In this document: piece after piece, positions 15,586 through 56,623 of the stretch
Position numbering within the stretch: the stretch's first letter is position 1
Layout: the number at the start of each line of letters is the position of its first letter
Virus record (IMG/VR): IMGVR_UViG_3300043399_000297
Coordinates: 180,023-244,022 of that record
Direction: 5' to 3' (one strand)
Length of the DNA stretch: 64,000 nt
Notes under the pieces: generated by a model
Seen by the model: the letters and a program-made list of their open reading frames with translations, nothing else
Told to the model about the DNA's origin: nothing
Database searches by the model: none
Position numbers and translations under genes: made by a program

Positions 15586-15615
15586 AGAAAGGGTTAACTT
15601 AAGTTAACCCTTTCT
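15586..15615. terminator. Perfect 30-bp palindrome / bidirectional terminator
   Basis: AGAAAGGGTTAACTTAAGTTAACCCTTTCT between convergent genes, followed by a T-run. Confidence 0.65.
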
Positions 15616-32217: not shown

Positions 32218-33832
32218 TCTCTCTGATTATCACAATGATGATTGGGCATTGTTTCTGCCTGCAATCTCGTCCTTCTTCATTAGCGGCTTAGGTAAGCAGC
32301 GTGAAGGTGAAAACTATTTTGACCCTACGAGAATTCCTGCAGGATTTAATGGTGATGTTGAATGTTTGAATTTCTTCAACAGTAAAGCAGGATTATTCAC
32401 ATATAAGTGGGGCTTATATTCTGCTGGTCACGCGAATCTAGATATTACTAAGGATGACAATAACGAATCTATCATCCGCAAAAGAGAAGAAGGTACATTT
32501 CTTCTAGGAGACAGCGGTGGATTCCAGATTCTTAAATGTCAGTGGCCCGCAGATTGGAAGGATCCTAACTGCCCTCGTGCAATGAAGAAAAGAACAGAAG
32601 TTCTTAAGTGGATGGATGAATATATGGACTATGGTATGTGTCTTGATATTCCATCACAGAGCCTGACAACTTATCATATCAAGGATAAGAAGACTAGTAC
32701 CTCGGCACATGGTATCAGCACCATTGAAGAAGCAATTACTGCTACCCATATCAATAACGAATACTTCATCAACAATCGTGATGGTCGCTGCAAGTTCTTA
32801 AATGTTTTGCAGGGCCGCAATCATAAGCAGAGTGATGACTGGTACGAGGAGATGAAGAAGTATTGCGATACCAACATCTATGGGGATCGTGCATTTAATG
32901 GCTGGGCGTTCGGTGGTCAAAACAAGATTGACATTCATTTGATGCTTAAGCGTTTAGTGGGTATTATTCACGATGGTTTCTTAGAAGAAGGCAAGCACGA
33001 CTTAATTCACTGTCTCGGCACTAGTATTATGGAATATGCAGTATTGTTTACTGATATTCAGAAGGCGATTCGCAAATATCATAATAGCAAGTTCAAGATT
33101 ACATTTGATTGTGCAAGCCCATTCTTTGCTGCTGCTAAAGGTCTAGCATACAACAACAATACATTTGAACACGATACAAAGTGGACTTATGCTATGGAGA
33201 AAACTGCTGAGAATAAAAAGTATGCAACTGACAATCGCAAGTATAGTCAAGGTTGCTTAGAAGATAATATTCATCAATTGTTTACTGATAGTCCAATAAC
33301 TGATAGATTGTTGATGAAAGATATCTGCTATCGTGGTGTAGGTTTTCTTGGTCAGCACGGTAAAGAAACTAAGACTAGCTGGGATACTCTTAGCTATACA
33401 TTGATACAAGCACATAATGTCTATCAGCATATCTATGCTGTTCAGGAAGCCAATCGTCGTTACGAGACAGGCATTCTTCCTAATATGGTTATAGACAAGT
33501 TTGATCATACAACTTTTGGTGAAATTGTTGACGAGATTTTTAGCCTTAAAGATAGACAAAGTAGCTTGGATTTGATAGAACATTATAGTAAGTTCTGGAC
33601 TCAGATGAAAGCAGGCCAAGGATTCTCTGGTAAGAAGGCAGTTAATTCTGAAACACAATCTACTGAATTATTCGATGGTAAGTTTGGTTCTAGTAAAGTT
33701 GAAAAAGTAAAGAAGGAGCCACTGAAATCTATGTTTGATGATTTGTTTTCAGTTGATGAAAGTGATATAGAAGTTGATGAAGAAATCATTGATAGCGATG
33801 ATGCTATACAAGATATGGTAGATGAATTATGA
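32204..33832 (+). CDS. dpdA: tRNA-guanine transglycosylase-fold protein, probable DNA 7-deazaguanine transglycosylase (DpdA-like)
   Basis: GDSGGFQ, MCLDIP, NVLQG, GWAFGG, IHCLG, TFDCAS, AHN motifs of the TGT family; clustered with folE/queD/queE. Confidence 0.75.
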   Translation: MDQINLSDYHNDDWALFLPAISSFFISGLGKQREGENYFDPTRIPAGFNGDVECLNFFNSKAGLFTYKWGLYSAGHANLDITKDDNNESIIRKREEGTFLLGDSGGFQILKCQWPADWKDPNCPRAMKKRTEVLKWMDEYMDYGMCLDIPSQSLTTYHIKDKKTSTSAHGISTIEEAITATHINNEYFINNRDGRCKFLNVLQGRNHKQSDDWYEEMKKYCDTNIYGDRAFNGWAFGGQNKIDIHLMLKRLVGIIHDGFLEEGKHDLIHCLGTSIMEYAVLFTDIQKAIRKYHNSKFKITFDCASPFFAAAKGLAYNNNTFEHDTKWTYAMEKTAENKKYATDNRKYSQGCLEDNIHQLFTDSPITDRLLMKDICYRGVGFLGQHGKETKTSWDTLSYTLIQAHNVYQHIYAVQEANRRYETGILPNMVIDKFDHTTFGEIVDEIFSLKDRQSSLDLIEHYSKFWTQMKAGQGFSGKKAVNSETQSTELFDGKFGSSKVEKVKKEPLKSMFDDLFSVDESDIEVDEEIIDSDDAIQDMVDEL

Positions 33833-34290
33833 ATATAGATGACAATATAGAAATGGCCAGAGCTACGCAAAGATTGCGTATTGTTGATCAGGCTAAACGA
33901 ATGATTTGGGTTACCTTTCGTAAAGAAGGAATTCATAAGTATCCTGATGCATTAGAAAACATTGATCTTGCTACAGGGAATGAATACGATGTAAGTTTTC
34001 TTGGATACCCACATAGGCATATCTTTCATTTTAAAGTGGGTATTCAAGTTAAGCACAATGACCGAGAAATTGAGTTCATTCAATTCAAACGCTATCTAGA
34101 AAATCTATATGGCAAGGGAGTTATTGATCTTGATTATCAGTCTTGTGAAATGATTTGTGATAGCTTGTATGAGCATATTGCAAGTCGTTACCCCGAGCGT
34201 GACATTGAAATCACAGTCAGCGAAGACGGTGAGAACGGTGCCACTATTTATTACAACACAACAAAACCTTATCAATCACTTGCCATCTAA
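33829..34290 (+). CDS. QueD-paralog T-fold protein, DpdL-like (putative CDG decarboxylase)
   Basis: LGYPHRHIF fits LxxxHRHxF; SCEM; VSEDGENGA. Confidence 0.6.
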   Translation: MNIDDNIEMARATQRLRIVDQAKRMIWVTFRKEGIHKYPDALENIDLATGNEYDVSFLGYPHRHIFHFKVGIQVKHNDREIEFIQFKRYLENLYGKGVIDLDYQSCEMICDSLYEHIASRYPERDIEITVSEDGENGATIYYNTTKPYQSLAI

Positions 34291-34300
34291 GGAGTATATA

Positions 34301-34522
34301 ATGGCTAAGACTAATATCAATCAGATTTTTGAAGATTTGGACACTCTACGCAATTTTTGCGTAGAATATGGTTATCGCTTTGATGAGCGCGACCTTTATA
34401 ATAACAAGAGCAACACTTATAAGGTGTTCCAGAGACATATGTCCGGGAAGCCAGTTAAGAACAATTGGGAAGCTGACCTAGCAAAGTTTAAGGAACAGGA
34501 AGTTCTAGGGACTCATAGGTAA
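34301..34522 (+). CDS. Hypothetical protein
   Basis: AAGGAG SD before ATG at 34301. Confidence 0.7.
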   Translation: MAKTNINQIFEDLDTLRNFCVEYGYRFDERDLYNNKSNTYKVFQRHMSGKPVKNNWEADLAKFKEQEVLGTHR

Positions 34523-34576
34523 AGTTGTTTGTAATATCTAGTGGCTTCGTTTACAGTTGGTGAAAGAAAATAACAA

Positions 34577-35755
34577 ATGAGAAAACTATTTTATATGGGC
34601 CTTGAAGCCTATAATGCTCGGTATACACTACAATTAACAGAATGGAATCGTCGAGTATTCGCTAGGCGGGGCCTTGATGTAGTGTATGTTTTGGGGCGCG
34701 AACTTGATAACAGTCAGAAGATCGTGACTGGTCAGGTGCTTGATGCACACGGTCGCTCTTACTATGCTATGAGTCAGATGATGAATCTTGTTCAGCTTAT
34801 GCAGCAGGGTGAAGTCACTAGCGAAGACGTAATCTACTTTGAAGATATGTTTCAGCCCGGTTTTGAATCACTGCCCTACATCATTGATCAGCTTCCCGAA
34901 GACAAGTGTCCTCACATCTTTGTTCGTTGTCTAGCACAGACTATTGATCCTGATGATTTTGTCCACGTTTGGGGAATGGATCGTTGGATGAGAGCATATG
35001 AACAAATGGTATGCGCTAGTGTGTCCGGTGTTCTTGCGACTAACGAAGAAATGGTTGCACATATGCGAGTAGCTGGATGGGACGTTCCTATCTATAATAT
35101 CTCAGGTCTTGCATTTGGTAAGGATGAGGTAATTGAAAGAGTAGACAATTATATTCGTCCCTTCAACAGTCGTAGGATGCGTGTAGTATTCTCAGCAAGA
35201 TGGGATCAAGAAAAGCAACCTGATTTCTATATGGATGTTATTGAGGAGTATAGAACTCGTCATCCAAAGGTTGACATTGAGTTTGTTGTTTGTAGTGGAG
35301 GAGAACTTCGTTCAAATAACGAAACTTATATGGCTCGCACTCGCAAGATGGTTGAAGACGGTAAGTTGATTATCTATGATAATCTTGACAAGAACAAGTA
35401 TTATGAGATTCTTAACGAAAGCCGTGTTGTATTCAATTGTGCGTTGCAGGATTGGGTGAGTAACACTGTAAGTGAAGCAGATGCACTGGGATGCAATGTA
35501 TTATACCCTGCCTATCGCAGTTTTCCTGAAACATTTGCCAATGATCACGAAAGAATGTATGTTCCTTGGTCTATTGATGACGCGGTAAATAAGCTTGATG
35601 TATTGTTGAAGAAGGCTCATCCTAATATGGGCAAGATCAGTGATTATACTGATGGAACCATTGATCGTATCTGTGACATTCTTGAGGGTAAGGGTGATCA
35701 ATATCGTCGTTATACTACAGATTATCGTAAGCACACTAGAGAGGCAAAGTATTAA
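34577..35755 (+). CDS. GT-B (GT4-like) glycosyltransferase
   Basis: VVFSARWDQEKQP, FNCALQDWVSNTVSEADALG, YRSFPE. Confidence 0.75.
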   Translation: MRKLFYMGLEAYNARYTLQLTEWNRRVFARRGLDVVYVLGRELDNSQKIVTGQVLDAHGRSYYAMSQMMNLVQLMQQGEVTSEDVIYFEDMFQPGFESLPYIIDQLPEDKCPHIFVRCLAQTIDPDDFVHVWGMDRWMRAYEQMVCASVSGVLATNEEMVAHMRVAGWDVPIYNISGLAFGKDEVIERVDNYIRPFNSRRMRVVFSARWDQEKQPDFYMDVIEEYRTRHPKVDIEFVVCSGGELRSNNETYMARTRKMVEDGKLIIYDNLDKNKYYEILNESRVVFNCALQDWVSNTVSEADALGCNVLYPAYRSFPETFANDHERMYVPWSIDDAVNKLDVLLKKAHPNMGKISDYTDGTIDRICDILEGKGDQYRRYTTDYRKHTREAKY

Positions 35756-36624: not shown

Positions 36625-37464
36625 ATGTCACATTACTATGTATATGCTTACCTTGATCCGCGAGAACCGGGCCAATTCATAACTGAGAATATTTCATTTC
36701 TCTACAAACCTTTCTATATAGGAAAGGGCAAAGATGGAAGAATGTACGATCATTTAAAGGATGCTCGTCCTACCCGAAAATTTAAAAACAGCCATAAGCT
36801 TAACACTATCCGGCAAATGTGCGCTGAGGGTATACCACCTACAATCATTAAATTACACGAAGGTCTTACAGAAGATGAGGCTGTGCGAATAGAGGAAACT
36901 TTAATCAAGCGCCTCAAGGAAGAATATGGGTTGACTAATATTAGAACCTCTTCTTGGTCTTCCGGTAATTCTCACAGCAATAGCGGCAAAGAATTCAATA
37001 ATCCTAGAAAAGATACAATAACAATTTACAACACTTTGCTAGGTGAACATACTGTCATTAAAAAACCTCAACTTGGCCTATTCATTGAAATATACGGAAA
37101 AGACAATATAATTAACACTTCTGCTATTAAAACCAGAGTGGGTAAGAAACAAACCAAAGCCAGACACGGAACTACAAATGGAATGTACGGTAAATCCGCA
37201 GTCAGAGGAAAACGATGGTGTATCGTTAACTGTGAGGAAAAGTTTTTATCACCCAAAGAAATTGACAGATACATTGCGCTTGATTATAATGTGGAGTACG
37301 GAAGAAAGTATAAACCTTCCGGAAAGAGAGTTATATTTGAAGGGGAATTAAAGGGTAAATATAGATCGGATGATGACATATCTGCTTTCCCTAACAGAAA
37401 ATATCAGTATGGTTTAGTGTGGAACTCTACTAAACCTACATTTATGAACCATAAACAATTATGA
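36625..37464 (+). CDS. GIY-YIG (LEM-3-like) endonuclease
   Basis: YYVYAYLDPR..PFYIGKGK..RMYDH..EE.LI..LTN; preceded by GATAAATA and hairpin ATGTTGAAAT/ATTTCAACAT. Confidence 0.75.
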   Translation: MSHYYVYAYLDPREPGQFITENISFLYKPFYIGKGKDGRMYDHLKDARPTRKFKNSHKLNTIRQMCAEGIPPTIIKLHEGLTEDEAVRIEETLIKRLKEEYGLTNIRTSSWSSGNSHSNSGKEFNNPRKDTITIYNTLLGEHTVIKKPQLGLFIEIYGKDNIINTSAIKTRVGKKQTKARHGTTNGMYGKSAVRGKRWCIVNCEEKFLSPKEIDRYIALDYNVEYGRKYKPSGKRVIFEGELKGKYRSDDDISAFPNRKYQYGLVWNSTKPTFMNHKQL

Positions 37465-37479
37465 GTAAGGAGAATCATT

Positions 37480-38160
37480 GTGAGTTTTGATAAGACTAAA
37501 ACAGACCCTAAGTTGGGAAAGAAGATTAGAGAACACCTTATTAACAAAGGTGTAGAATGCCCTATTGTTGAATCAGCACTTGAAGTAGAAAACAAGAAAA
37601 AAATTGATATTCTTGAAGAGGCATTTACTACTATTTGGAAGACGGTGGGGCTGGATCTGAATGATGATAGTCTTGCGGAAACTCCCAACAGAATGGCCAA
37701 AATGTATATTAATGAGATTTATTTCGGTCTCAAAGAAGAAAACTTCCCCAAATGTACCGTTGTAGAAAACAAGATGGGTCACGATGAAATGGTAGTTGAA
37801 CGCAATGTGGTTGTGATGAGTAACTGTGAACATCACGGCGTTGTCATCGATGGTCTTGCTACCGTTGCATATGTTCCGACTACTAAGGTGCTTGGTCTAT
37901 CAAAGATAAATCGTATCGTTGAATACTTCAGTAAGCGTCCTCAGATTCAGGAACGATTGACCGAGCAGGTGTTCTATGCATTGCAGTATATCCTTGAAAC
38001 AGAGAATGTGGCTGTTATGATTGATGCTAAGCATTATTGCGTAGCCAGCCGTGGCGTTGAAGATACTGGTTCTCGCACTATCACTAGCCGTCTCGGTGGT
38101 GGATTCAAGACTGACCCTGCTGCAAGAGCAGAGTTCCTCAGTATTGCGAGAATGAAATGA
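37480..38160 (+). CDS. folE: GTP cyclohydrolase I
   Basis: ETPNRMAKMY, SNCEHH, GLSKINRIV, RPQIQERLT, HYCVASRG. Confidence 0.95.
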   Translation: MSFDKTKTDPKLGKKIREHLINKGVECPIVESALEVENKKKIDILEEAFTTIWKTVGLDLNDDSLAETPNRMAKMYINEIYFGLKEENFPKCTVVENKMGHDEMVVERNVVVMSNCEHHGVVIDGLATVAYVPTTKVLGLSKINRIVEYFSKRPQIQERLTEQVFYALQYILETENVAVMIDAKHYCVASRGVEDTGSRTITSRLGGGFKTDPAARAEFLSIARMK

Positions 38161-38692: not shown

Positions 38693-38988
38693 CTGACAAA
38701 TACCAAAAAATTATTGATATTATGCGCAAACAGACCGCAGAACGCTTAGCCGATCCTGTTAAACTACGCGAATGGATTCGTCAGGTTCATGGTCCTGAAA
38801 TGCGAGAACTTATTGGTGAAGAGGCAGAGCAAATGCTTGTCGTCCTCAAGTTAGTAGGTCATCATAGTGATTCAAACAATCAAATAACGCATACTTATTT
38901 TTACAAGTATAATGATAAAGAATATAGAATAACATATGGAGCGGGAGACGATCCATTAATAGAAGAGGTATTACCATATGATCTTTAA
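38689..38988 (+). CDS. Hypothetical protein
   Basis: GTGA overlap start after GAGGTGG. Confidence 0.65.
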   Translation: MTDKYQKIIDIMRKQTAERLADPVKLREWIRQVHGPEMRELIGEEAEQMLVVLKLVGHHSDSNNQITHTYFYKYNDKEYRITYGAGDDPLIEEVLPYDL

Positions 38989-39451
38989 TAAGATTAAGGA
39001 ACTTAAGGAAGAAGGTAGGAAGATAGGTATTACTTTCAGCACCTTTGATATGCTTCACGCGGGTCATATCGCAATGCTCGCCGAAGCTAAAAATCATTGT
39101 GATTACTTGATTGCTGGTTTACAGACTGATCCTACTATTGATCGCCCTGATACCAAGAACAAACCTATTCAATCAATTGTTGAACGGCAGATTCAATTAG
39201 CAGCAGTTAAGTATGTTGATGAAGTTGTAATATACCAGACCGAACAAGATTTAATTGATCTATTACTTATTTTACCCGTTGATGTTCGTATTTTAGGAAT
39301 TGAATATGAAGGTAAAGCATTTACTGGCCGTAAAGAATGTATTCAACGAGGCATAGAGTTAGTATATAACAGTCGTGATCATAGCTTTAGTTCAAGCAGC
39401 TTAAGAAAGCGTGTTGCGGATGCGCAGATAGTGGATAAATTAAATGCGTGA
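38978..39451 (+). CDS. Cytidylyltransferase (TagD/RfaE-like)
   Basis: TFSTFDMLHAGH, LIAGLQTD, KYVDEV, FSSSSLR. Confidence 0.85.
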   Translation: MIFNKIKELKEEGRKIGITFSTFDMLHAGHIAMLAEAKNHCDYLIAGLQTDPTIDRPDTKNKPIQSIVERQIQLAAVKYVDEVVIYQTEQDLIDLLLILPVDVRILGIEYEGKAFTGRKECIQRGIELVYNSRDHSFSSSSLRKRVADAQIVDKLNA

Positions 39452-39662
39452 CAATGAGTTAGACTTACACGGAGTAAAACATCAGGATGTTGACTTATTG
39501 GTAGAAAATTTTATTTTTACCAATCAGGATAGATTTCCCTTGACAATCATCTGCGGAAATAGTATAAAGATGATAGAACGAGCCAACTCCGTGATAAATA
39601 GGATTGGCTGCGAAACTGTCTCACTTAGATATGGTGTGATAACAATAAGGAAGTTTAAGTAA
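39444..39662 (+). CDS. Smr/MutS2-domain small protein
   Basis: ELDLHG...LTIICGNS. Confidence 0.65.
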   Translation: MRDNELDLHGVKHQDVDLLVENFIFTNQDRFPLTIICGNSIKMIERANSVINRIGCETVSLRYGVITIRKFK

Positions 39663-40100
39663 TTGTTGTATCTAGCATACGGAATGAATACTAATATCGA
39701 TCAGATGGCTTATCGCTGTCCAGCCGCCGTTTCACTTGGTCGCTATGATTTGCCTGATCATCGTTTAGTTTTCCGTGGCGTAGCTGATGTTGTTTATAGC
39801 CAGGGTGATACATTGCAAACTGTATTGTGGGACATTACACGAAATTGCGAAGAAGCATTAGATATTCTTGAGGGCTATCCACATCTTTATGATAAGAAAG
39901 AGGTACCTATTGAGTTTATGAATATCAATGATTACGCTATGATTTATTATATGGTTAATCCATATGTTCCTTCTCATCCTAGCATAACCTATCAAGAAAT
40001 GCTAAAAGAAGGATATTATGATCACAGTTTAGATTTAGAACAAATCTATAACGCTGAAGGATATTGTGATATATACAACATTAATTACAGTGGTCTCTGA
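39663..40100 (+). CDS. Gamma-glutamylcyclotransferase-like (GGCT/AIG2) protein
   Basis: YLAYGMN..QM..RCP, LVFRGVAD, LDILEGYPHLY. Confidence 0.8.
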   Translation: MLYLAYGMNTNIDQMAYRCPAAVSLGRYDLPDHRLVFRGVADVVYSQGDTLQTVLWDITRNCEEALDILEGYPHLYDKKEVPIEFMNINDYAMIYYMVNPYVPSHPSITYQEMLKEGYYDHSLDLEQIYNAEGYCDIYNINYSGL

Positions 40101-40143
40101 CGCTCATCCCACTCAAAACATTCTGCGTGTCATCTTATAAGGA
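40089..40143 (+). promoter_or_regulatory. PreQ1-I-like riboswitch candidate (H-type pseudoknot) upstream of queD
   Basis: P1 AGTGG/CCACT, loop ending CATC, A-rich CAAAACA tail, loop TGACGC complementary to GCGTGTCA, then AAGGA SD. Confidence 0.55.
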
Positions 40144-40150
40144 AATAAAG

Positions 40151-40621
40151 ATGGCAAAATATATTAGTACTAAAACATATAACCAAATAGGACCAGTAGC
40201 ATATCGTCAGTGGAAGGCAGATAGCCACTGTAATTTGATTCACGGTTATGCACTTAGTTTTCATTTTGAGTTTGAATCAAATACATTAGACGCAAGAAAC
40301 TGGGTAGTAGACTTTGGTGGATTAAAGCCACTTAAGGCATTGCTTGAAGACTGGTTTGATCACACATTGCTTGTTGCTGTTGATGATCCTCAGCGTGAAG
40401 AACTACTTAGACTAGGTGAGTTGAAGCTTGCTAAGATTACTGAAGTTGAAAAGACAGGATGCGAAGGCATCGCAGACTTTCTTTATGAATATGTGAATAC
40501 TATTTTTCTTCCAACATATGGTTGGGGAGACAATGTTTGGTGTTGTAAGGTAGCAGTACGCGAGACCGACAGCAATATGGCGATGCGTGTTGGTCACAGA
40601 GAAGATAAGGAGTTTGATTAA
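40151..40621 (+). CDS. queD: 6-carboxytetrahydropterin synthase
   Basis: HCNLIHGY, WVVDFGGLK, FDHTLL, GCE, VRET; AAGGA SD supports ATG at 40151. Confidence 0.85.
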   Translation: MAKYISTKTYNQIGPVAYRQWKADSHCNLIHGYALSFHFEFESNTLDARNWVVDFGGLKPLKALLEDWFDHTLLVAVDDPQREELLRLGELKLAKITEVEKTGCEGIADFLYEYVNTIFLPTYGWGDNVWCCKVAVRETDSNMAMRVGHREDKEFD

Positions 40622-41499
40622 TGCCAATTCAACAACAAAAAATTTCAATTTTACTTCCTACTAGAGGAAGGCCTGATCTATTAAAGAGAAGCGTCTTTTC
40701 TCTTTTGGATACTGCAAGTAATACAGACGGTATTGAAATATTGTTGGCAATTGATGATGATGATCCATTGACCATTGATTATGTCAATAATGAATTGGTT
40801 CCAGAATTGAATGACCGCGATGTTGCAATGCGAGCCTTTACATTTAAAAGATTGGGTTATCTTAATCTTCATCTATATGTTAATCATTTAGCCCGTGAAA
40901 GTATGGGTGAGTGGATGATATTATGGAATGATGATGCAGTGATGCAAACTGACAACTGGGACCTTGAAATTGCTAAGTATAATGGACAATTTAAGGTACT
41001 ACGATTTAAAGATAATCATAATGAACACCCTAATGCAATATTTCCTTGCATACCAAAAGACTGGGTAGCATTATTTGATGTTTTGACTCCTCATCAAGTA
41101 ACTGATTCTTGGGTAAGTCAAGTTGCATACATCGTAGGTATCATTCAAAATGTTCCTAGTGTTTATGTTTATCACGATAGACACGATTTGACCGGTAATA
41201 ATAACGATCAAACTGCTCAAGAAAGAATGTTTGACGATAATAATCCACACCAACCCACTGATTTGAATCACCCTGACCAATTAAGGTTGAAGTTAGCGTG
41301 GGGTAAGAAACTGAATTGGTATCTACAAAGAATTGGACAGAGCCCGGGCTGGCTAGATCAGTGGTTAAAGGATCCAAAAAACTTTGACTTGTGGTCTACA
41401 TTCAAAGAAAACGACCCGAATAATCAATGTTTTACTAGTTTGGAAGAAAGAGAAGAAATTGTCAAGAATAAAAAGAATTTGGTTCAAGGCTCTGGGTGA
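40621..41499 (+). CDS. GT-A (GT2-like) glycosyltransferase
   Basis: ISILLPTRGRP, EILLAIDDDD, WNDD. Confidence 0.8.
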   Translation: MPIQQQKISILLPTRGRPDLLKRSVFSLLDTASNTDGIEILLAIDDDDPLTIDYVNNELVPELNDRDVAMRAFTFKRLGYLNLHLYVNHLARESMGEWMILWNDDAVMQTDNWDLEIAKYNGQFKVLRFKDNHNEHPNAIFPCIPKDWVALFDVLTPHQVTDSWVSQVAYIVGIIQNVPSVYVYHDRHDLTGNNNDQTAQERMFDDNNPHQPTDLNHPDQLRLKLAWGKKLNWYLQRIGQSPGWLDQWLKDPKNFDLWSTFKENDPNNQCFTSLEEREEIVKNKKNLVQGSG

Positions 41500-41623
41500 G
41501 AAGGCAAGCGATTGTGATAATGAAAGTGATAGTGTAGCTTGGGTAAGAACATTCTTGATTTTTCAAGCAATAGTCACTAATATGTTCATTATCGCAAACG
41601 CATTGAGGCATTGGAATGGTTAA
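41459..41623 (+). CDS. Small membrane protein
   Basis: WFKALGEKA..ESDSVAWVRT..IIANALRHW; start uncertain. Confidence 0.55.
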   Translation: MSRIKRIWFKALGEKASDCDNESDSVAWVRTFLIFQAIVTNMFIIANALRHWNG

Positions 41624-41855
41624 GATATATTCTAGTTGGAGTACCTCTCCTATAGGAAAAGCATCTAGATGGAAATTAGTATTAGCCAAATTTTGGTTTC
41701 TCACGCATCCATATATTAGTGTTACTCCTAGTTCAAGTACTTCCGGTTGGGGATTTGACAAAACACCCTACGGATTCATTCTTTGGTTACCCGGAAAGAA
41801 ACATAAAAGGTGTGGAAAAAGAATTCATATTTCTTGGAGAATGTTAATTGATTAA
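41616..41855 (+). CDS. Hypothetical protein
   Basis: 79 aa, overlaps its neighbours by a few nt. Confidence 0.5.
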   Translation: MVKIYSSWSTSPIGKASRWKLVLAKFWFLTHPYISVTPSSSTSGWGFDKTPYGFILWLPGKKHKRCGKRIHISWRMLID

Positions 41856-42351
41856 AAAAGTATATTACACAGACAAACAGATTGACGCATTGATTCATAA
41901 CATCCTTCGTCAGATCATAAAGGATCAGTGGGTGCCTGACTATATCGTGGGTCTTACTCGCGGCGGTCTAGTTCCCGCAGTCAAGATCAGTCAGTATCTT
42001 GACATTCCATTAGAAACTGTTAAAGTCAGTTTGCGTGACGGAAGTGATGATGGGTGTGAAAGTAACTGTTGGATGGCAGAAGATGCATACGATGGTAAGA
42101 AGATTCTCATTGTTGATGACATTAACGATACTGGTGCTACATTAGAATGGATCAAGAAAGATTGGCAATCAAGTGCATTCCCCGGTGATGAAAAATGGGA
42201 TGGTATTTGGAATGAAAGTGTTCGCTTTGCAGCATTGATTGACAATGATCAAAGTTTAACGCAGATAAATTATATTGGTAAGAGTATCAACAAGGCTGAA
42301 GATCCACACTGGGTAATTTTTCCTTGGGAAAATTGGTGGGAAAATGACTGA
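41848..42351 (+). CDS. Type I purine phosphoribosyltransferase (Gpt-like)
   Basis: GLTRGGLVPA, ILIVDDINDTGAT PRPP motif, WVIFPWE. Confidence 0.88.
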   Translation: MIKKVYYTDKQIDALIHNILRQIIKDQWVPDYIVGLTRGGLVPAVKISQYLDIPLETVKVSLRDGSDDGCESNCWMAEDAYDGKKILIVDDINDTGATLEWIKKDWQSSAFPGDEKWDGIWNESVRFAALIDNDQSLTQINYIGKSINKAEDPHWVIFPWENWWEND

Positions 42352-42514
42352 CTTAATTATAGTTATAAGTGTTTCTGTATTGTGCGCTATACTTTCTTTT
42401 ATTGTGTATGGATGTTGGCGTTGGGAACAAGATAGATATGAATATAGAAAAAAGTATGGGATTGATCCCAAATATCACGGTTGGAAAATAGATGACAAAA
42501 ATCAAGATAAGTGA
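42344..42514 (+). CDS. 56-aa membrane protein not in the ORF track
   Basis: MTDLIIVISVSVLCAILSFIVYGCW... Confidence 0.55.
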   Translation: MTDLIIVISVSVLCAILSFIVYGCWRWEQDRYEYRKKYGIDPKYHGWKIDDKNQDK

Positions 42515-43361
42515 ATTATTTTACTCAATCCAAGGTGAGGGTAGATATATGGGAGTCCCAAGTATCTTCCTGAGAACATTTGGATGCAACTTTACTTGTA
42601 GCGGCTTTGGAATGCCAAAAGGAGAATTATCAAATGAGCGGGAAAAAATTGAAGCAAACGAATACAACGAATACGGACAGCTTCCTCTCGTCACTACGGG
42701 CTGCGACTCCTACGCATCCTGGGATCCTCGCTTCAAGCATCTTTCTCCCAGCAGGGACATTGATACTATTGTCAGCGACATTATGGAACTACTACCGTTT
42801 AAAGAATGGAAAGAAGAACACCTCGTCATCACAGGAGGAGAACCACTCCTCGGATGGCAACGATCCTACCCAGAACTCTTAAGTCACGAAAAGATGAAAA
42901 GTCTCAGAGAGATTACCTTTGAGACAAACGGCACACAACCGATTACAGATGAGTTTATCAAATATCTTGACGATTGGCGTTGGGAAGCTGTTCTGGGTGA
43001 AAAGACTGGCTATGCATTTGATCGTGAGATTACATTTAGCGTAAGTCCCAAACTATCTTGTTCCGGACATACTACAGAAGAAGCTATCAAGCCCGAGGTA
43101 GTGTGCCGGTATGAAGATGTTGGTTATACCTATCTCAAGTTTGTTATCGCAACAGAAGACGATGCTAATGAAGCATTAGAAATGATTAAGCGTTATCGTC
43201 AAGAAGGCTTTATAGGTCCTGTTTACTTTATGCCTGTCGGCGGAGTAGAGAGTGTATATCATCTTAACAATCGCACAGTTGCAGACCTTGCTATAAAAAA
43301 TGGTGTTCGTTATAGTGATCGGCTGCATTTGCCATTGTTCGGCAACAGGTGGGGTACCTAA
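42492..43361 (+). CDS. queE: 7-carboxy-7-deazaguanine synthase (radical SAM)
   Basis: ELFYSIQGEG, FLRTFGCNFTC..CDS, ITGGEP, ETNGT, SPKL, RLH. Confidence 0.9.
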   Translation: MTKIKISELFYSIQGEGRYMGVPSIFLRTFGCNFTCSGFGMPKGELSNEREKIEANEYNEYGQLPLVTTGCDSYASWDPRFKHLSPSRDIDTIVSDIMELLPFKEWKEEHLVITGGEPLLGWQRSYPELLSHEKMKSLREITFETNGTQPITDEFIKYLDDWRWEAVLGEKTGYAFDREITFSVSPKLSCSGHTTEEAIKPEVVCRYEDVGYTYLKFVIATEDDANEALEMIKRYRQEGFIGPVYFMPVGGVESVYHLNNRTVADLAIKNGVRYSDRLHLPLFGNRWGT

Positions 43362-43378
43362 ATAGTAAAAGTTTATTA

Positions 43379-43425
43379 CCCCTCGTATTGTATAAATAAT
43401 GAAGACTATTTAATAATACGAGGGG
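43379..43425 (+). promoter_or_regulatory. RBS-sequestering hairpin with a late promoter in its loop
   Basis: CCCCTCGTATT...TATAAATA(43391-43398)...AATACGAGGGG then ATG 43429. Confidence 0.75.
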
Positions 43426-43428
43426 AAT

Positions 43429-44184
43429 ATGACAAATCCTATTAATAAGAAAACCACAGAACAGTTCATAAGCGAAGTAAATCCGGAATTAGGTATTACG
43501 ATATTAGGAGAGTATCTTAATACCGACACCAAGATTGAATATCAATGTAAGCACGGGACCTTCTATTCATTGCCTTGGCAAATATTAAAGTTAAAACATT
43601 GTTGTCGCAAGGGATATTACGAAAGTGGCAAGATGTGGGAAAAAAGAACCAACACCTTGTTTGAACTCAAGAACAGGGCTCTTAAGGACAGACCCAACAT
43701 TGATGTTACAGAGTGTTATATTGACACTTCCGGAAGATACAAAAGATTAGCAAATATTAGATGCACCAAACATAATGTATATTATAGTTCTATAGCAAGT
43801 AACAAGATGGGACAATGCCCTGAATGTTACAAAGAAGACAATATGGAACGCCTAAAGTTAGCGCAGGTTGCGGCATGGACAAGTCAGTCGGTCGGTAGTT
43901 TTGTTAGTGACAGTGAAACAAAATGGTTAGATTCTTTGGGGATTAAAGGTAGACAAGTATGGTTAAAGGATGTACAATACAAAGTAGACGGGTATGACGA
44001 GACCACAAACACTGTTTATTTATACCATGGTAGATTTTGGCATGGGTGTCCAGAAACATTTGATCCAAACTTGATTCATCCGGTAGTGAAGATACCGATG
44101 AAGGATTTATATGAGAAAACGATTATGTATGAAAATAAGATCAAAGATGCAGGGTACAACCTCGTAGTAGAGTGGGGAAGATAA
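43429..44184 (+). CDS. Vsr/EDxHD-like endonuclease with Zn-binding repeats
   Basis: Cys/His repeats; C-terminal SDSE..WLD..KVDGYD..YLYHGRFWHG..GYNLVVEW. Confidence 0.7.
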   Translation: MTNPINKKTTEQFISEVNPELGITILGEYLNTDTKIEYQCKHGTFYSLPWQILKLKHCCRKGYYESGKMWEKRTNTLFELKNRALKDRPNIDVTECYIDTSGRYKRLANIRCTKHNVYYSSIASNKMGQCPECYKEDNMERLKLAQVAAWTSQSVGSFVSDSETKWLDSLGIKGRQVWLKDVQYKVDGYDETTNTVYLYHGRFWHGCPETFDPNLIHPVVKIPMKDLYEKTIMYENKIKDAGYNLVVEWGR

Positions 44185-44245
44185 TGTTACGTCTAGAATA
44201 TCCAATTGGGTTGACAAGTATGAATATATTAAATGGAAGTTAAAA

Positions 44246-45019
44246 ATGACTGATAACTTAGAACAAAAGATTGTTGACTATTGGAATCGTCAACCCTGTA
44301 ACATTAAGCATAGTACCAGTGAGATTGGTACACTAGAGTTCTTTGAAGAAAACTCTAACAAGCGATATAAGGTCGAGCCACATCTCCGTGAACTTGCGCA
44401 ATTCCACTTATATCAAGGCAAACGAGTGCTTGAAATTGGTTGTGGGTTAGGCGCAGATGCAGCAGAATTTGTGAAAAACGGTGCTGAATATGTGGGAATT
44501 GACATTAGTGACGAAAGTGTTAAGCTTGCACAAAAGCGTTTTGAAGTAATGGGATTGCAAGGTCAATTTTTTGTTGACAACGCAATTAATGACCTATCTA
44601 AATATGGCAAGTTTGATCTTGTTTATAGTTGCGGTGTGCTACATCATTATCCGGATATTCAAAAGATTTTTAATAACATTCATAATGTTTTAGTTGACGG
44701 CGGTGATTTGAGATTTTTTGTTTACGCAAAGAATAGCTGGAAATATGCTATGATTAAAGCTGGATTAGATCAATATGAGGCTCAAGCAGGATGCCCATAT
44801 GCAAAAGCATATACGCACGATGAAATTTATGAATTGCTTGAAGGTAAGTTTGAAATAGCAAGAATACGCCAAGCTCATTGTTTTATGTGGAATGTAGAAA
44901 AATACAAACAACATATCTATGAACTTGAACCCTGGTTTGCAGCAATGTCTACTGAAATGCGAGAGGCAGTGAGTGAATACCTAGGTTGGCATCTATTAGT
45001 AAAAGCAAATAAGATATGA
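44246..45019 (+). CDS. Class I SAM-dependent methyltransferase
   Basis: VLEIGCGLG, GIDIS, FDLVYSCGVLHH. Confidence 0.85.
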   Translation: MTDNLEQKIVDYWNRQPCNIKHSTSEIGTLEFFEENSNKRYKVEPHLRELAQFHLYQGKRVLEIGCGLGADAAEFVKNGAEYVGIDISDESVKLAQKRFEVMGLQGQFFVDNAINDLSKYGKFDLVYSCGVLHHYPDIQKIFNNIHNVLVDGGDLRFFVYAKNSWKYAMIKAGLDQYEAQAGCPYAKAYTHDEIYELLEGKFEIARIRQAHCFMWNVEKYKQHIYELEPWFAAMSTEMREAVSEYLGWHLLVKANKI

Positions 45020-46344
45020 AAAGAATCGGATTCCTAGTTAGTTCGCAGACATTAATACCGCACGGTGGTATTGGTCAATTCACAAAAAGTTTCTGCGAGT
45101 TAATGAATAGTCAAGGACTATATGTGGATGTTATCACCGATAAAAGCCCTCAAGGTATTGCGGATGATTTTGTTAGAGAACTCAAAGCAAATATCATCTA
45201 TCCAGACAATCCATTAAAATACACTGACCACAGTGCCATCTTTATGTATGGTGATAGTTATTGCTATGAGCGTATGGCTAACTTTCGTGATGCTACTATT
45301 AAGGCTCTTACATCTAACTTGTATGATGTTTTTGTTTGCAATACATACGAGACTATTCAGGTAATATCTACTCTCGGATTAACAGATTATATCCAAACCA
45401 TTGCATATACCCATTTGGAAAGTCAAATCTTCAAGGATACTAAGAATCCTTTCTTAGATAGTGTCAACGATATGATGAGGTTGCAATTACAGATGCCAAA
45501 CATCACTATCGGCACTCAAAGTGTGTTCAATCGTCTTCGTTTTGAAAATGCATATCATCTACCCATTCCTCTCCCCGAACCAAACTTGTTGAAAGAATAC
45601 GATAAAAATCGTGAAGGTGTGTTGTTCATCGGTCGTTGGGAAGAAGGTAAGAATCCCGAGTTGTTTCTTGACTTGATTGAGCAGACTAGACTTCCCGCTC
45701 GTATTATGACTAGTAGCAATGGTGCTAAAAAGTTTGATGAGAGACTAAAGAAGCTTGGAGTTGACTATCAGATTAAAGTTGGAATCATTGGGCAGGAAAA
45801 GGTAGATTTTATCACTGGATGTAGAGTAGCTTTTAATCCAAGCACGGTAGAAAGTTATGGAATTGCTTTTCTAGAACAGATTATTCAATTGCCTACATTT
45901 GCGTTAATCAACCAGCGTTGGACAGATAATTTCCCAAGCACACAATTTTTTACGACAAGTAAGCGTAATATGGCTGAGGATGTAAAAAAAGTTTATGATC
46001 AGTATCCTACTGCAAAAGATTGGTATAAAGAATATGACTCAGTGAACCATTTTAAAGTTCACGAAGAGGCGGTGTTTCATAAGTGGAATCATTGCTTCAA
46101 TGAATTTGAATCTCGCAAGAGTAATAGTAATACTGCTAAGATTTGCAATGAAACCACCGTCAAATATAGCGATTACATCACTGACTTAAAGCGTAGAATC
46201 ATTTGTATTGACGATGTGAAAAGTGTATTGTCCAATAAACATAAGTTTAGAGTAATATACACTGACACTGATACTTATTTGACAAAGGACCCTTCTTTTG
46301 AACCCAAAGAAGAAGTAATAGGAACAGGATTGTTTGAGTTTTGA
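45016..46344 (+). CDS. GT-B (GT4-like) glycosyltransferase
   Basis: PHGGIG, LFIGRWEEGKNP, NPSTVESYGIAFLE. Confidence 0.8.
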   Translation: MKRIGFLVSSQTLIPHGGIGQFTKSFCELMNSQGLYVDVITDKSPQGIADDFVRELKANIIYPDNPLKYTDHSAIFMYGDSYCYERMANFRDATIKALTSNLYDVFVCNTYETIQVISTLGLTDYIQTIAYTHLESQIFKDTKNPFLDSVNDMMRLQLQMPNITIGTQSVFNRLRFENAYHLPIPLPEPNLLKEYDKNREGVLFIGRWEEGKNPELFLDLIEQTRLPARIMTSSNGAKKFDERLKKLGVDYQIKVGIIGQEKVDFITGCRVAFNPSTVESYGIAFLEQIIQLPTFALINQRWTDNFPSTQFFTTSKRNMAEDVKKVYDQYPTAKDWYKEYDSVNHFKVHEEAVFHKWNHCFNEFESRKSNSNTAKICNETTVKYSDYITDLKRRIICIDDVKSVLSNKHKFRVIYTDTDTYLTKDPSFEPKEEVIGTGLFEF

Positions 46345-46345
46345 T

Positions 46346-47215
46346 ATGAAAAAGATACTAGTTACTGGAAGTTCAGGGTATATTGGTTCGCACCTTTGTA
46401 AGTTGCTTGAGAAGGATTATATAGTTCACGGACTTGATATTCGTGAGCCACAACATCCAGTCAAGGAATTCTACAAGATTGATATTAATCGTCCTTTTGA
46501 TTCAGACGAGGAATACGATGCAGTTATTCATCTTGCTGCATTAGTTAATATTTCTGAAAGCGAAAAGCACCCCATAATTCATTATATTACCAATTTAAAC
46601 GGAACAATGAATGTAATCAATAGGATAAAGACTAAGAACTTTATCTTTGCATCTACTGGAGCGGCTGTATTATGTGATAGTGCATATGGAATTAGCAAGA
46701 GAGCAGCAGAAGATGTAGTAAGAGAATATTGCACAGAACACGACAACATTCCATATACCATTTTTAGATTTTACAATGTAATTGGTACAAGCGGGTATGG
46801 TCCTACTAATATAGATGGACTTATGTATAATTTAATGAAGATGAGAGAGACTAGAGAATTCACTATATATGGTAACGATTATCCTACTGGGTTTGACGGA
46901 ACCTGTGTTAGAGATTATGTTCACGTTGACGAAATCTGTTATGCGCTTAAGCTAGCAATTGAAAAGCCAGCTAACACTGTTGAATCGTTAGGACACGGTG
47001 TGGGATATAGTGTCAAGGAAATCTTTGAGATTTTTGAAAGAGTGAATCAAAATTATCTGTATCCCACTGGAGAAGAAGATGCTATCACAATGAAGATAGG
47101 TCCTCGCAGAAAGGGAGACACTCCCCATAGCGTTTTGGAAGATGTGTCTAAATATATGGTTGATATGTTTACGATAGATGAGCTTTTAAAGGTTGACACA
47201 CTCACTAAACAATGA
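46346..47215 (+). CDS. NAD-dependent nucleotide-sugar epimerase (GalE-like)
   Basis: ILVTGSSGYIG, IHLAA, YGISK, FRFYNV, DGTCVRDYVHV, RRKGD. Confidence 0.88.
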   Translation: MKKILVTGSSGYIGSHLCKLLEKDYIVHGLDIREPQHPVKEFYKIDINRPFDSDEEYDAVIHLAALVNISESEKHPIIHYITNLNGTMNVINRIKTKNFIFASTGAAVLCDSAYGISKRAAEDVVREYCTEHDNIPYTIFRFYNVIGTSGYGPTNIDGLMYNLMKMRETREFTIYGNDYPTGFDGTCVRDYVHVDEICYALKLAIEKPANTVESLGHGVGYSVKEIFEIFERVNQNYLYPTGEEDAITMKIGPRRKGDTPHSVLEDVSKYMVDMFTIDELLKVDTLTKQ

Positions 47216-55681: not shown

Positions 55682-56623
55682 TTGATGACTATACGAACCT
55701 GGTATGTTGGAAAAAACAACTATAAAAAGTTAACGCTTGAATCCATCAGTGAAAATGAAAACTTGTTCACTATGGAATTTCTTGATGTTGATTGTGAAAA
55801 TTTCCCAAATGGTATAGATGCTTTAGCATCTAATATACCTGACATAAAAAAGTCAGCAGAAGTATTATATAGTGGTGGTCTTGATAGTGAGGCCACCATT
55901 GTATCTTGTTTAAAACACAACATTCCTGTTATTGCAGTAACTATGAAGTTAATGTATAAAGGTAGCCCCTTTAATACGCACGATTTATATTATGCTGAAA
56001 AATTTTGCAGAGAACATAACGTTAGACAAGTTTTCTATGAATTGGATGTTGAAAATTTTTTCACAAACGGAGATCACGTACCATATATGGAGCCATATGG
56101 TATAACTTATACTATGGTCCCTACACATATGTGGTTGATACAGCAGTGTCACAATTTCCCAATCATTGGCGGAGATTATAGTTGGCCGCAAACTGAAATC
56201 AATAAACCACAATATAGCCCGCATAGGCACGAATTTGCGTTTTATGATATTTTTATGCGAGAACAAGGCATACCTGGAATAGGCAATATGCTTAGTCATA
56301 GTTTAGAGTCAAACTTGTTCTTTATCAAAGAGCATATTAAACTTGTATCTGAAAACCCGTTTGATATGGGAGGAGATAACCTACGTATCAAAAACTTAAA
56401 ACATCAAATGCTATACAATCTAGGGTTTGGTCGTTTGGAACTAAGACACAAAAGTCACGGTTGGGAAAATATCACGATGTTAAAAGATTGGTTTGATGGT
56501 GTTAAAATCAAAAAAGATATGGAAGAGCTATGCGGTACAACAGCTAGTATCATTAAATGGAATACTAGTATGGGTAGAATGTTGGGCGTTGAGCCCGGAA
56601 AAAATGACAATTTTGGAATTTAA
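55682..56623 (+). CDS. PP-loop (adenine nucleotide alpha-hydrolase-like) protein
   Basis: VLYSGGLDSE..IIGGD; lacks the QueC C-terminal Cys cluster. Confidence 0.6.
   Translation: MMTIRTWYVGKNNYKKLTLESISENENLFTMEFLDVDCENFPNGIDALASNIPDIKKSAEVLYSGGLDSEATIVSCLKHNIPVIAVTMKLMYKGSPFNTHDLYYAEKFCREHNVRQVFYELDVENFFTNGDHVPYMEPYGITYTMVPTHMWLIQQCHNFPIIGGDYSWPQTEINKPQYSPHRHEFAFYDIFMREQGIPGIGNMLSHSLESNLFFIKEHIKLVSENPFDMGGDNLRIKNLKHQMLYNLGFGRLELRHKSHGWENITMLKDWFDGVKIKKDMEELCGTTASIIKWNTSMGRMLGVEPGKNDNFGI

Follow-up and report, generated by a model that had tools for sequence, protein, structure and literature searches.

The short RNA fold in front of the queD gene of this phage is a real, conserved element that resembles, but is not, a known preQ1 riboswitch, and it is probably a new sensor RNA that is predicted to switch on an enzyme of a DNA-base-modification pathway. 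The element, of about 45 nt, forms an H-type pseudoknot and is conserved with compensating base changes in both helices in about 180 related uncultured phage contigs. It was found in a window of 64,000 nt, comprising positions 180,023 to 244,022 of the IMG/VR record IMGVR_UViG_3300043399_000297, which represents only 64 kb of a 244-kb contig. On the comparative evidence it is regarded as a candidate for a new riboswitch class, with small-molecule binding and the direction of switching inferred from sequence alone.

The pseudoknot and its conservation

The initial annotation described a preQ1-I-like pseudoknot upstream of queD, and this observation is confirmed: the P1 strands, a 15-nt loop (40094-40108) ending in CATC, an A-rich tail, the sequence GCGTGTCA at 40125-40132, the Shine-Dalgarno (SD) sequence and the ATG (40151-40153) of a PTPS/QueD open reading frame (ORF) are all present (Table 1). 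Two details need correction. The stop codon TGA of the upstream GGACT-like ORF lies inside the loop, and the pseudoknot register supported by comparison is GACGC (40099-40103) with GUGUC (40127-40131), plus C40105:G40125 and A40106:U40124. The register first proposed, in which TGACGC pairs with a downstream strand through GC:GC pairs and a 2-nt bulge, is rejected as those columns do not covary, whereas the shifted register does.

Table 1. Features of the queD leader and of related genes in the 64-kb window
Coordinates	Strand	Feature	Basis
40089..40093	+	P1 5' strand (AGUGG)	Pairs with 40109-40113; in 99 distinct sequences pair 3 is CG 55, AU 30, UA 14 and pair 2 is GC 86, CG 9, UA 2; the two closing G-C pairs never vary
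40094..40098	+	L1 (UCUCU): variable first base, invariant C-U, variable-length spacer	First base U 59, A 40, C 39 in 138 distinct sequences; positions 2 and 3 are C and U in all 138
40099..40106	+	P2 5' strand: core GACGC, U (mismatch), C-A	Core pairs show 4-6 pair types each; the C:G pair is invariant; the A:U pair becomes G:C in exactly the three distinct sequences with a UCCGC box
40107..40108	+	L2 (U, C); C40108 immediately 5' of the P1 3' strand	C in 138 of 138; same position as the ligand-pairing cytosine of class I preQ1 aptamers (PMC11625349)
40109..40113	+	P1 3' strand (CCACU)	Covariation with 40089-40093
40114..40123	+	L3: A-rich tail CAAAACAU followed by UC	Tail of 8 nt in 135 of 138 sequences; positions 3, 5 and 7 are A in all 135 of these
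40124..40131	+	P2 3' strand: UGC of the invariant UCUGC box (40122-40126) plus core GUGUC; also the predicted switching sequence	Covaries with 40099-40106; 40128-40131 are shared with the start-codon-sequestering helix
40128..40156	+	Alternative hairpin, UGUCAUCUU (40128-40136) with AAGAUGGCA (40148-40156); buries the start codon and leaves the SD in its loop	Minimum free energy (MFE) structure, -8.9 kcal/mol; RNAalifold consensus of group A leaders, with compensatory pairs
40139..40143	+	Shine-Dalgarno AAGGA, 7 nt before the ATG	Read directly from the sequence
40151..40621	+	queD (6-carboxytetrahydropterin synthase family, motif CNLIHGY)	Pfam PTPS (PF01242) E 4.4e-15; PHROG QueD-like E 1.3e-39; 73% identical to ACP17 gp119
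39663..40100	+	Upstream GGACT-like ORF; stop codon (40098-40100) inside the aptamer loop	Pfam GGACT; PHROG gamma-glutamyl cyclotransferase
37480..38160	+	folE (GTP cyclohydrolase I)	Pfam E 2.9e-58; 60% identical to ACP17 FolE
42492..43361	+	queE-like radical SAM gene	PHROG QueE-like E 3.8e-56; NCBIfam QueE models match below their cut-offs
33829..34290	+	DpdL-like QueD paralogue (LGYPHRHIF)	52% identical to ACP17 gp125; LxxxHRHxF signature of PMC10516641
32204..33832	+	Possible distant DpdA/TGT-like transglycosylase (a lead only)	Atlas feature hits to TGT (0.92) and DpdA (0.88) clusters; no Pfam or PHROG hit
55682..56623		PP-loop (SGGLDS) protein	Atlas relatives partly carry QueC or Asn-synthase Pfam hits

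Taken alone, the sequence is unremarkable. Its MFE z-score is -0.97, with 32 of 200 shuffles folding as well, and the evidence that the fold is more than chance is comparative. A covariance model finds one strong hit in the window (54.5 bits, E 1e-17) and one hit per locus in about 180 related loci, always on the coding strand upstream of queD. Of 80 related IMG/VR loci 59 carry the element, these being 57 of the 78 QueD loci searched, at 41-70 bits, plus two identical to the window. All 100 of the pattern-found viral loci tested carry it, at 36-69 bits. A pattern scan of genome contigs returned 23 hits, about the chance expectation, of which 17 were rejected by the model and six, on MAG contigs, were kept, each lying upstream of a divergent QueD. 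The bins of these MAG contigs hint at Bacteroidota or other freshwater hosts. In total, 138 distinct sequences were obtained. Of 193 instances found by regular expression, 172 are directly followed by a QueD homologue (32-100% identity), and most of the rest are followed by a short ORF and then queD.

The absence of conservation or covariation in homologous leaders had been named beforehand as grounds for refutation, but both are present. On an unfitted MAFFT alignment 94.8% of cells are paired (94.6-94.8% across analyses), against 76.0% in shuffles and 37-50% with slid partners, and the covariation score is 0.481 against 0.152, with 0 of 500 shuffles as high. The P2 variants include GACGC/GUGUC, GGCAU/AUGCC, GACUU/AAGUC, GACAA/UUGUC, GUGU/ACAC, GGCG/CGCC, GGUG/CACC, GGAC/GUCC and GAAC/GUUC. 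The A:U to G:C swap links L2 to the UCUGC box, and many unpaired bases are invariant, as in aptamers.

The element was absent from the cultured phages examined. Megablast of the region against cultured phages gave no match, short blastn searches with two leaders gave only noise, and the covariance model found no copy in any of 11 cultured phages (ACP17, X1, BUDD, phiST, MA9V-3, BUCT-ZZ01, Phosso, R5C, Me-ZS1, Iggy and Erebus). A second, weak covariance-model hit in the window, at 55845-55901 on the minus strand (15 bits), lies antisense inside an ORF and has no P2 partner, and was treated as chance. Literature searches found no description of this motif.

Relationship to known riboswitches

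The architecture shares several features with class I preQ1 aptamers (Rfam RF00522), especially type I. Both are small H-type pseudoknots with a 5-bp P1, of consensus aGuGG/CCaCu, closed by G-C, a cytosine immediately 5' of the P1 3' strand, an A-rich L3 and a location upstream of a queuosine or 7-deazaguanine pathway gene. The base preceding the invariant cytosine is mostly U, as in type I (U 100, C 26, A 12 of 138).

The element is nevertheless not a member of the Rfam PreQ1 family. No Rfam family matched the whole window at gathering, 301-nt and 62-nt slices gave no hit even at E<=10, and none of 20 diverse loci reached any gathering score. The only Rfam family to align at all was PreQ1, on relative L009 (L numbers designate related loci), at 9.8 bits and E 7.9 against a gathering score of 39 bits, and covering only model positions 6-34 of 45. 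The first base of L1, which in preQ1-I is the conserved, ligand-contacting U6 (UU in types I and III), is variable, and the invariant bases are instead the C and U that follow it. Nor does the A-rich L3 lead directly into a short P2 containing SD bases. It is followed by the invariant UCUGC box, which preQ1-I lacks and which pairs with UCA of L2; P2 spans 7-8 positions, with a core of 4-5 bp, a U.C mismatch and then C:G and A:U pairs into the UCUGC box, and the SD lies 8-30 nt downstream of P2. The predicted logic is ON rather than OFF, and the element has been found only in uncultured phage contigs.

The preQ1-II (RF01054) and preQ1-III (RF02680) riboswitches have the same pathway association and are also pseudoknotted aptamers, but they have HLout-type folds of about 80-100 nt with different conserved cores (PMC11625349), and neither covariance model appeared in any scan. 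The proposed logic, in which ligand-stabilized folding of an aptamer frees a ribosome-binding site that is otherwise paired, is that of small pseudoknot and purine ON switches such as guanidine-III and the add adenine riboswitch, although the sequences, pockets and ligands are unrelated and no Rfam match was found. Orphan riboswitch candidates carried by phages, for example the manA and wcaG motifs (survey in PMC2864571), are likewise structured leaders without an assigned ligand. They are found mainly in phage or metagenomic DNA upstream of auxiliary metabolic genes, but have different folds and gene associations, the present element being tied to a DNA-modification precursor pathway.

Predicted expression platforms

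The 3' strand of P2 is complementary to the translation-initiation region in four different leader designs, so that pseudoknot formation and sequestration of the ribosome site exclude each other. In one design UGUCAUC:GAUGRCA forms over the start codon; this is the RNAalifold consensus with compensatory pairs, and in L125, L164 and L211 it is a perfect 8-bp AAGUCAUC:GAUGACUU. In another, CCUAUG:CAUAGG forms over the SD, with variants CCUUAUU:AAUAAGG in L103 and CCUAUA:UAUAGG in L197. The remaining two are UGUCU:AGACA just after the SD, and ACUCC:GGAGU in L078. No terminator-like site follows the element.

Blocking the aptamer raises predicted SD accessibility from 0.23 to 0.64 in group B leaders, and AUG accessibility from 0.10 to 0.36 in group A leaders, which include the window. 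The effect of blocking peaks at the P2 3' strand and the bases that follow it. The accessibility shifts are moderate, however, and the ON direction rests on nearest-neighbour folding without pseudoknot or tertiary energies. Duplexes between the switching strand and the initiation region average -7.7 kcal/mol (z = -2.0 against shuffles), although only half of the leaders beat 95% of shuffles in this complementarity test. In the window, the sequestering hairpin is -8.9 kcal/mol and the P2 duplex about -9.0 kcal/mol.

Interpretation and alternatives

The explanation favored here, with a confidence only a little better than even, is that the element is the aptamer-like domain of a cis-acting translational regulator of queD, most likely a new riboswitch class. 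Without a ligand the sequestering helix should dominate and queD would be poorly translated; a ligand that stabilizes the pseudoknot should free the start codon or SD and turn queD on. [quoted passage not shown] The invariant cytosine next to P1 suggests a ligand with a guanine-like face, such as a 7-deazaguanine, guanine or a pterin such as the QueD substrate. An activating switch at the first committed step of a biosynthetic route would be unusual, and all described preQ1 riboswitches repress (PMC11625349). In addition, in the window and 17 other contexts the upstream ORF ends inside the aptamer, so terminating ribosomes would unfold it, and about 90 group B leaders contain an internal promoter-like TTTACA-N17-TATAAT from which transcripts would lack the aptamer.

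The interpretation in the initial annotation is only partly supported. It had proposed a feedback sensor whose ligand, as no QueC or QueF was recognizable in the window and a DpdL-like protein was present, could be CDG, 7-deazaguanine or preQ0 rather than preQ1. The conserved pseudoknot, its resemblance to class I preQ1 aptamers, the DpdL-like protein and the lack of a Pfam QueC or QueF match among ORFs of at least 100 aa in the window are all upheld, but the argument from missing QueC to a new ligand does not generalize, as the same aptamer core sits 1.2 kb downstream of a clear QueC homologue (E about 1e-20) in the L063/L067/L079/L081/L177 clade. A divergent preQ1-type riboswitch, in which preQ1, preQ0, CDG or 7-deazaguanine stabilizes the pseudoknot and represses queD, would follow the usual metabolic logic of end-product repression of the first committed enzyme, and is in keeping with the aptamer architecture and the presence of FolE, QueD, QueE and DpdL homologues. 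It is considered unlikely because the ribosome-binding site lies outside the pseudoknot, the four leader designs predict its release rather than occlusion, no terminator follows and the Rfam preQ1 models do not match.

A structured leader working without a small molecule, either as the binding site of a phage or host protein (autoregulation or a translational repressor) or as a constitutive pseudoknot setting the basal translation, stability or coupling of queD, appears equally unlikely. The upstream ORF does end 0-20 nt before P1 in 94 of 151 contexts and inside the element in 18, phages of this kind encode translational repressors (ACP17 is annotated with a RegA-like protein), and a ligand is only inferred from the sequence. 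Against this, the fold and the placement of its invariant bases parallel a known ligand pocket, two mutually exclusive conserved structures imply a switch, and the link to queD, and to no other gene, is kept across QueD proteins as low as 32% identical and across unrelated neighbors, a pattern typical of metabolite sensors. That the sequence is merely a chance stem-loop, or promoter or operator DNA, is very improbable. The unexceptional single-sequence fold and the promoter-like group B leaders, which have an inverted repeat across the -10, could be read this way, but the idea is contradicted by compensatory changes in two interleaved helices with variable loop lengths of 13-20 nt, which a DNA site for a protein would not produce, and group A leaders lack the internal promoter-like pattern. 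A frameshift or readthrough stimulator was considered because upstream ORFs end close by, but was rejected because the upstream genes are unrelated and the stop position relative to the knot varies.

It is possible, although somewhat less likely than not, that this is a previously undescribed riboswitch class confined to phages, a preQ1-I-like pseudoknot rewired into an ON switch and sensing a compound other than preQ1 with a guanine-like face, candidates being 7-deazaguanine, CDG, preQ0, guanine or the pterin substrate of QueD. It would then be the first RNA sensor known to govern synthesis of a DNA hypermodification precursor. Phages replace guanine in their DNA with 7-deazaguanines to escape restriction and CRISPR, and a well-supported structured leader with about 140 distinct natural variants, tied exclusively to the enzyme that commits the shared folate precursor to this route, makes the question of how the pathway is regulated directly testable. 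If the element binds a metabolite, it would add a new riboswitch class, would show how the smallest known aptamer fold can be re-used with an extended P2 and inverted logic, and could identify which intermediate phages monitor. The compact 45-nt aptamer, with its natural ON platforms, would also be useful as a sensor part.

Pathway and genomic context

Of the components of a DpdL-type 7-deazaguanine DNA-modification cluster lacking QueC (PMC10516641), FolE, QueD, QueE-like and DpdL-like proteins are found in the window, while DpdA is represented only by an Atlas lead. No ORF of at least 100 aa in the window matches Pfam QueC, QueF or TGT, although the PP-loop protein provides a QueC/AsnB-like lead and the window covers only part of the contig.

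The ORFs upstream of the element in related loci fall into more than 45 unrelated clusters. A sigma70-like promoter ends 3-14 nt before P1 in 32 of 162 contexts, and several of these match TTGACA-N16/17-TATAAT at 12 of 12 positions. For the likely source sample only DNA runs, and no RNA-seq run, were listed, so that these promoters are read from sequence alone.

The queD leader

The sequence of the queD leader reads exactly as in the initial annotation, running from AGTGG through a 15-nt loop, CCACT, an A-rich tail and GCGTGTCA to AAGGA, followed by seven bases and the ATG that opens a PTPS/QueD ORF (identified with Pfam; PHROG QueD-like, E 1.3e-39). Two details had been missed: the upstream GGACT-like ORF ends with a TGA inside the proposed loop, and the GTG start obtained when ORFs are listed is only an extension of the frame, as the ATG preceded by the Shine–Dalgarno (SD) sequence lies downstream of it. 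Taken alone, the fold is not above chance (MFE -13.4 kcal/mol, z = -0.97). No Rfam family matches the window at the gathering score, nor is there a match at E<=10 in slices of 301 nt and 62 nt.

Coordinates of the leader, its predicted structural parts and other features of the window
Feature	Position	Strand	Remarks
Leader, P1 to ATG	40089-40153
P1	40089-40093 with 40109-40113
L1	40094-40098
P2	40099-40103 with 40127-40131		plus 40105:40125 and 40106:40124
L2	U40107, C40108
L3	40114-40123
queD ORF	40151-40621		ATG at 40151; GTG extension of the frame from 40127
Upstream GGACT-like ORF	39663-40100		stop codon TGA at 40098-40100
Covariance-model hit	40085-40137		54.5 bits, E 1e-17
Weak covariance-model hit	55845-55901	-	antisense inside an ORF
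FolE	37480-38160
QueE-like radical SAM enzyme	42492-43361
DpdL-like QueD paralogue	33829-34290		LGYPHRHIF
Three adjacent genes mirroring ACP17 gp123-gp125	32204-35755	+	order differs from ACP17
Deazaguanine genes interleaved with nucleotide and sugar enzymes	38978-47215	+
ORF with SGGLDS PP-loop	55682-56623	+	313 aa
HNH, NUMOD3 and GIY-YIG homing-endonuclease-like ORFs	15599-16222, 17726-18373, 27271-27888, 53054-53653	-
HNH, NUMOD3 and GIY-YIG homing-endonuclease-like ORFs	36625-37464, 43429-44184	+
Jumbo-phage cargo	3294-3662, 8586-11681, 19796-25562, 22440-22883, 62262-63461

Distribution of the element

The window is part of a 244-kb IMG/VR contig from a freshwater metagenome. The closest cultured QueD is gp119 of Acidovorax phage ACP17 (73% identity), but there queD overlaps its upstream gene and has no leader. 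A protein-guided scan of IMG/VR returned 80 loci with a QueD 80-100% identical, and their upstream regions showed an obvious shared motif with compensating changes. We aligned 36 distinct copies (alignment A1) and built from them a covariance model containing P1 only. In the window this model gives one strong hit, at the queD leader; the single weak hit elsewhere has no P2 partner and is regarded as chance. Of the 78 QueD loci searched, 57 contain one hit of 41-70 bits, making 59 of 80 with the two loci identical to the window. Every hit is on the coding strand, just upstream of queD or of a short ORF that precedes queD.

A degenerate DNA pattern found at least 120 loci in viral contigs, and all 100 of those tested with the model are strong hits of 36-69 bits. 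One of these contigs, L118 (L numbers denote individual loci carrying the motif), has two copies about 1 kb apart, at 4-56 and 998-1051, the second copy being weak (24.9 bits) and at the contig edge. The same pattern gave 23 hits across 185,579 species genomes, about the chance expectation, but six of them are real (37-53 bits); these are contigs of metagenome-assembled genomes (MAGs), and each lies upstream of a much more divergent QueD. Contigs carrying the motif (L088, L092, L100, L101, L103 and L107) are binned in MAGs labelled Bacteroidetes, Crocinitomicaceae, Chitinophagales, Nitrospira and Rickettsiales. Most are short and look like phage DNA, so these labels may hint at hosts or may be binning errors. 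So far the element is known only from uncultured phage contigs, and the eleven cultured phages with QueD that were searched lack it.

In all there are 138 distinct aptamer sequences. Of 193 instances found by regular expression, 172 are followed directly by a QueD homologue (32-100% identity). Most of the rest either are followed by a small ORF, a cupin or a methyltransferase-like gene and then queD, or run off the contig. The ORFs upstream fall into more than 45 unrelated clusters. The element therefore belongs to queD.

Structure of the pseudoknot

Both helices of an H-type pseudoknot covary. In A1, an unfitted MAFFT alignment, 94.8% of cells are paired compared with 76.0% in shuffled controls and 37-50% with slid partners; the covariation score is 0.481 versus 0.152, and 0 of 500 shuffles are as high. 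In a second alignment (A2) of 99 distinct sequences, fitted to P2 only, the corresponding values are 94.6%, 75.3% and 35-50%, with a score of 0.481 versus 0.142 and again 0 of 500 shuffles as high. P1 varies as AGCGG/CCGCU, AGAGG/CCUCU, AGUGG/CCACU, ACCGG/CCGGU and AUCGG/CCGAU. P2 varies as GACGC/GUGUC (the window), GACAU/AUGUC, GGCAU/AUGCC, GACUU/AAGUC, GACAA/UUGUC, GUGU/ACAC, GGCG/CGCC, GGUG/CACC, GGAC/GUCC, GAAC/GUUC, GGCU/AGCC and GACG/CGUC.

P2 continues past a U.C mismatch into an invariant UCUGC box, where C pairs with G and A with U. The only three distinct sequences with G in place of that A are exactly the three whose box reads UCCGC. The register initially proposed, in which TGACGC pairs with GCG..TCA around a bulge, is therefore only partly right. 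The invariant unpaired bases are the C-U at L1 positions 2-3, the final C of L2, three adenines of the tail, and the box.

Comparison with preQ1 riboswitches

Class I preQ1 riboswitches are defined [PMC11625349] by an H-type knot with a 5-bp P1 closed by G-C, a specificity cytosine directly before the P1 3' strand (preceded by U in type I), a ligand-contacting U at the start of L1, an A-rich L3 and SD bases in P2. The knot with its P1, the cytosine and the A-rich L3 are present here. The L1 uridine is not conserved (U 59, A 40, C 39 of 138), P2 is longer and includes the UCUGC box, and the SD lies 8-30 nt beyond P2. The Rfam PreQ1 model aligns to relative L009 at only 9.8 bits against a gathering score of 39, over model positions 6-34 of 45, and does not align to the window at all. 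None of 20 diverse loci reaches the gathering score of any Rfam family. The element thus resembles preQ1-I, and may share its fold and perhaps its ancestry, but it is not a member of that family as defined. Literature searches found no description of it.

Predicted expression platform

The leaders downstream of P2 come in several designs, in each of which the P2 3' strand, together with the next few bases, is complementary to the translation-initiation region. In group A, which includes the window, UGUCAUC pairs with GAUGRCA across the start codon. Examples are UGUCAUCUU/AAGAUGGCA in the window, UGUCAUUGUU/AACAAUGGCA in L100, UGUCAUCA/UGAUGACA in L025 and UGCCAUC/GAUGGCA in L068. In L125, L164 and L211 the pairing is a perfect AAGUCAUC/GAUGACUU, and the P2 5' strand GACUU has the same sequence as ORF bases 3-7. 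RNAalifold picks this helix as the consensus and reports compensatory pairs. In group B, CCUAUG pairs with CAUAGG of the SD, the two Cs being also the last bases of P2, and L103 (CCUUAUU/AAUAAGG) and L197 (CCUAUA/UAUAGG) covary. In a third design UGUCU pairs with AGACA just after the SD (L207, L127 and L176), and in a fourth, in L078, ACUCC pairs with GGAGU.

Several calculations agree with this picture. Blocking the folded aptamer raises predicted SD accessibility from 0.23 to 0.64 in 73 group B leaders and AUG accessibility from 0.10 to 0.36 in 81 group A leaders, and in a 5-nt blocking scan the effect peaks at the P2 3' strand and the bases after it. Duplexes between the switching strand and the initiation region average -7.7 kcal/mol (z = -2.0 against composition-matched shuffles). 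In the window the sequestering hairpin is worth -8.9 kcal/mol and the P2 duplex about -9.0 kcal/mol, a balance that a ligand could plausibly tip. No terminator follows the element.

We therefore settle on a translational ON switch, in which a pseudoknot stabilised by a putative ligand would free the ribosome site. Whereas the conservation of the element, the covariation of both helices and the association with queD are established by the comparison of sequences, ligand binding, the regulation of queD and the direction of the switch are inferred. The direction rests on nearest-neighbour models that ignore pseudoknot and tertiary energies, and it is the opposite of every described preQ1 riboswitch. 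The structure noticed in the initial annotation is thus confirmed and is far more than chance. The interpretation placed on it there is supported only in part: the element is a conserved, covarying, preQ1-I-like pseudoknot inferred to regulate queD, but it belongs to no Rfam family and its logic is probably activation rather than feedback repression. We regard it as a new riboswitch candidate class.

Transcription context

In 32 of 162 distinct contexts a sigma70-like promoter ends 3-14 nt before P1, and several match the consensus at 12 of 12 positions, for example in L088, L080 and L138. This places the aptamer at the 5' end of the mRNA, as expected for a riboswitch. The window has no such promoter, and its aptamer follows, and overlaps, the upstream cistron. 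The same overlap occurs in 17 other contexts, so that the stop codon of the upstream ORF lies inside the aptamer in 18 of 151 contexts (among them L032, L064, L068 and L069), and in the L064 type an ORF of roughly 360 aa ends in the A-rich tail. Terminating ribosomes must therefore unfold the knot. In 94 of 151 contexts the upstream ORF ends 0-20 nt before P1.

About 90 group B leaders, in addition to L009 (at 2832-2860), contain an internal near-consensus sigma70-like promoter (TTTACA or TTGACA, 17 nt, TATAAT) embedded in the element, with the A-rich tail serving as the -35 and the loop of the SD hairpin as the -10. Transcripts starting there would lack the aptamer.

Pathway context and candidate ligands

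The window encodes FolE, QueD, a QueE-like radical SAM enzyme and a DpdL-like QueD paralogue. The last is 52% identical to ACP17 gp125, and both carry the LxxxHRHxF signature given for the proposed CDG decarboxylase [PMC10516641]. Just upstream of the DpdL-like gene lies a gene for a 542-aa protein with only Atlas-level leads to TGT/DpdA. Together with a glycosyltransferase-like homologue of ACP17 gp124, these two adjacent genes mirror ACP17 gp123-gp125 in a different order.

The initial annotation argued that no QueC or QueF is recognisable in the window, whereas a DpdL-like protein is present, and hence that the ligand may not be preQ1. No ORF of at least 100 aa in the window hits Pfam QueC, QueF or TGT, but only a quarter of the contig is in view. 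Moreover, an ORF with an SGGLDS PP-loop, although without a Pfam or PDB sequence hit, has Atlas relatives in viral clusters of which 13-19% of members carry QueC or Asn-synthase Pfam hits. It may be a divergent QueC-like or amidotransferase-type enzyme, which weakens the claim that the pathway lacks QueC. Furthermore, the same aptamer core lies 1.2 kb downstream of a clear QueC homologue in five loci, while DpdL occurs in the flanks of 36 loci. Lack of QueC therefore cannot be the reason for a different ligand, and whatever may be sensed is probably common to both pathway variants. The invariant cytosine next to P1 suggests a ligand with a 2-amino-4-oxo (guanine-like) face, a description that fits 7-deazaguanines, guanine, and also pterins such as the QueD substrate. 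An ON switch would fit a substrate or precursor signal better than an end product.

The deazaguanine genes are interleaved with genes for nucleotide and sugar enzymes, namely a cytidylyltransferase-like protein, the GGACT-like protein, GT2, a phosphoribosyltransferase, a SAM methyltransferase, GT1 and a GalE-like epimerase, which hints at a more elaborate, uncharacterised product than a plain 7-deazaguanine. There are also many HNH, NUMOD3 and GIY-YIG homing-endonuclease-like ORFs, two of which are inserted within the deazaguanine gene cluster. The jumbo-phage cargo of the window includes Cpn10, DnaJ, a ClpB-like protein, a ClpX-like protein, a ferritin-like protein and two very large proteins with amidoligase domains.
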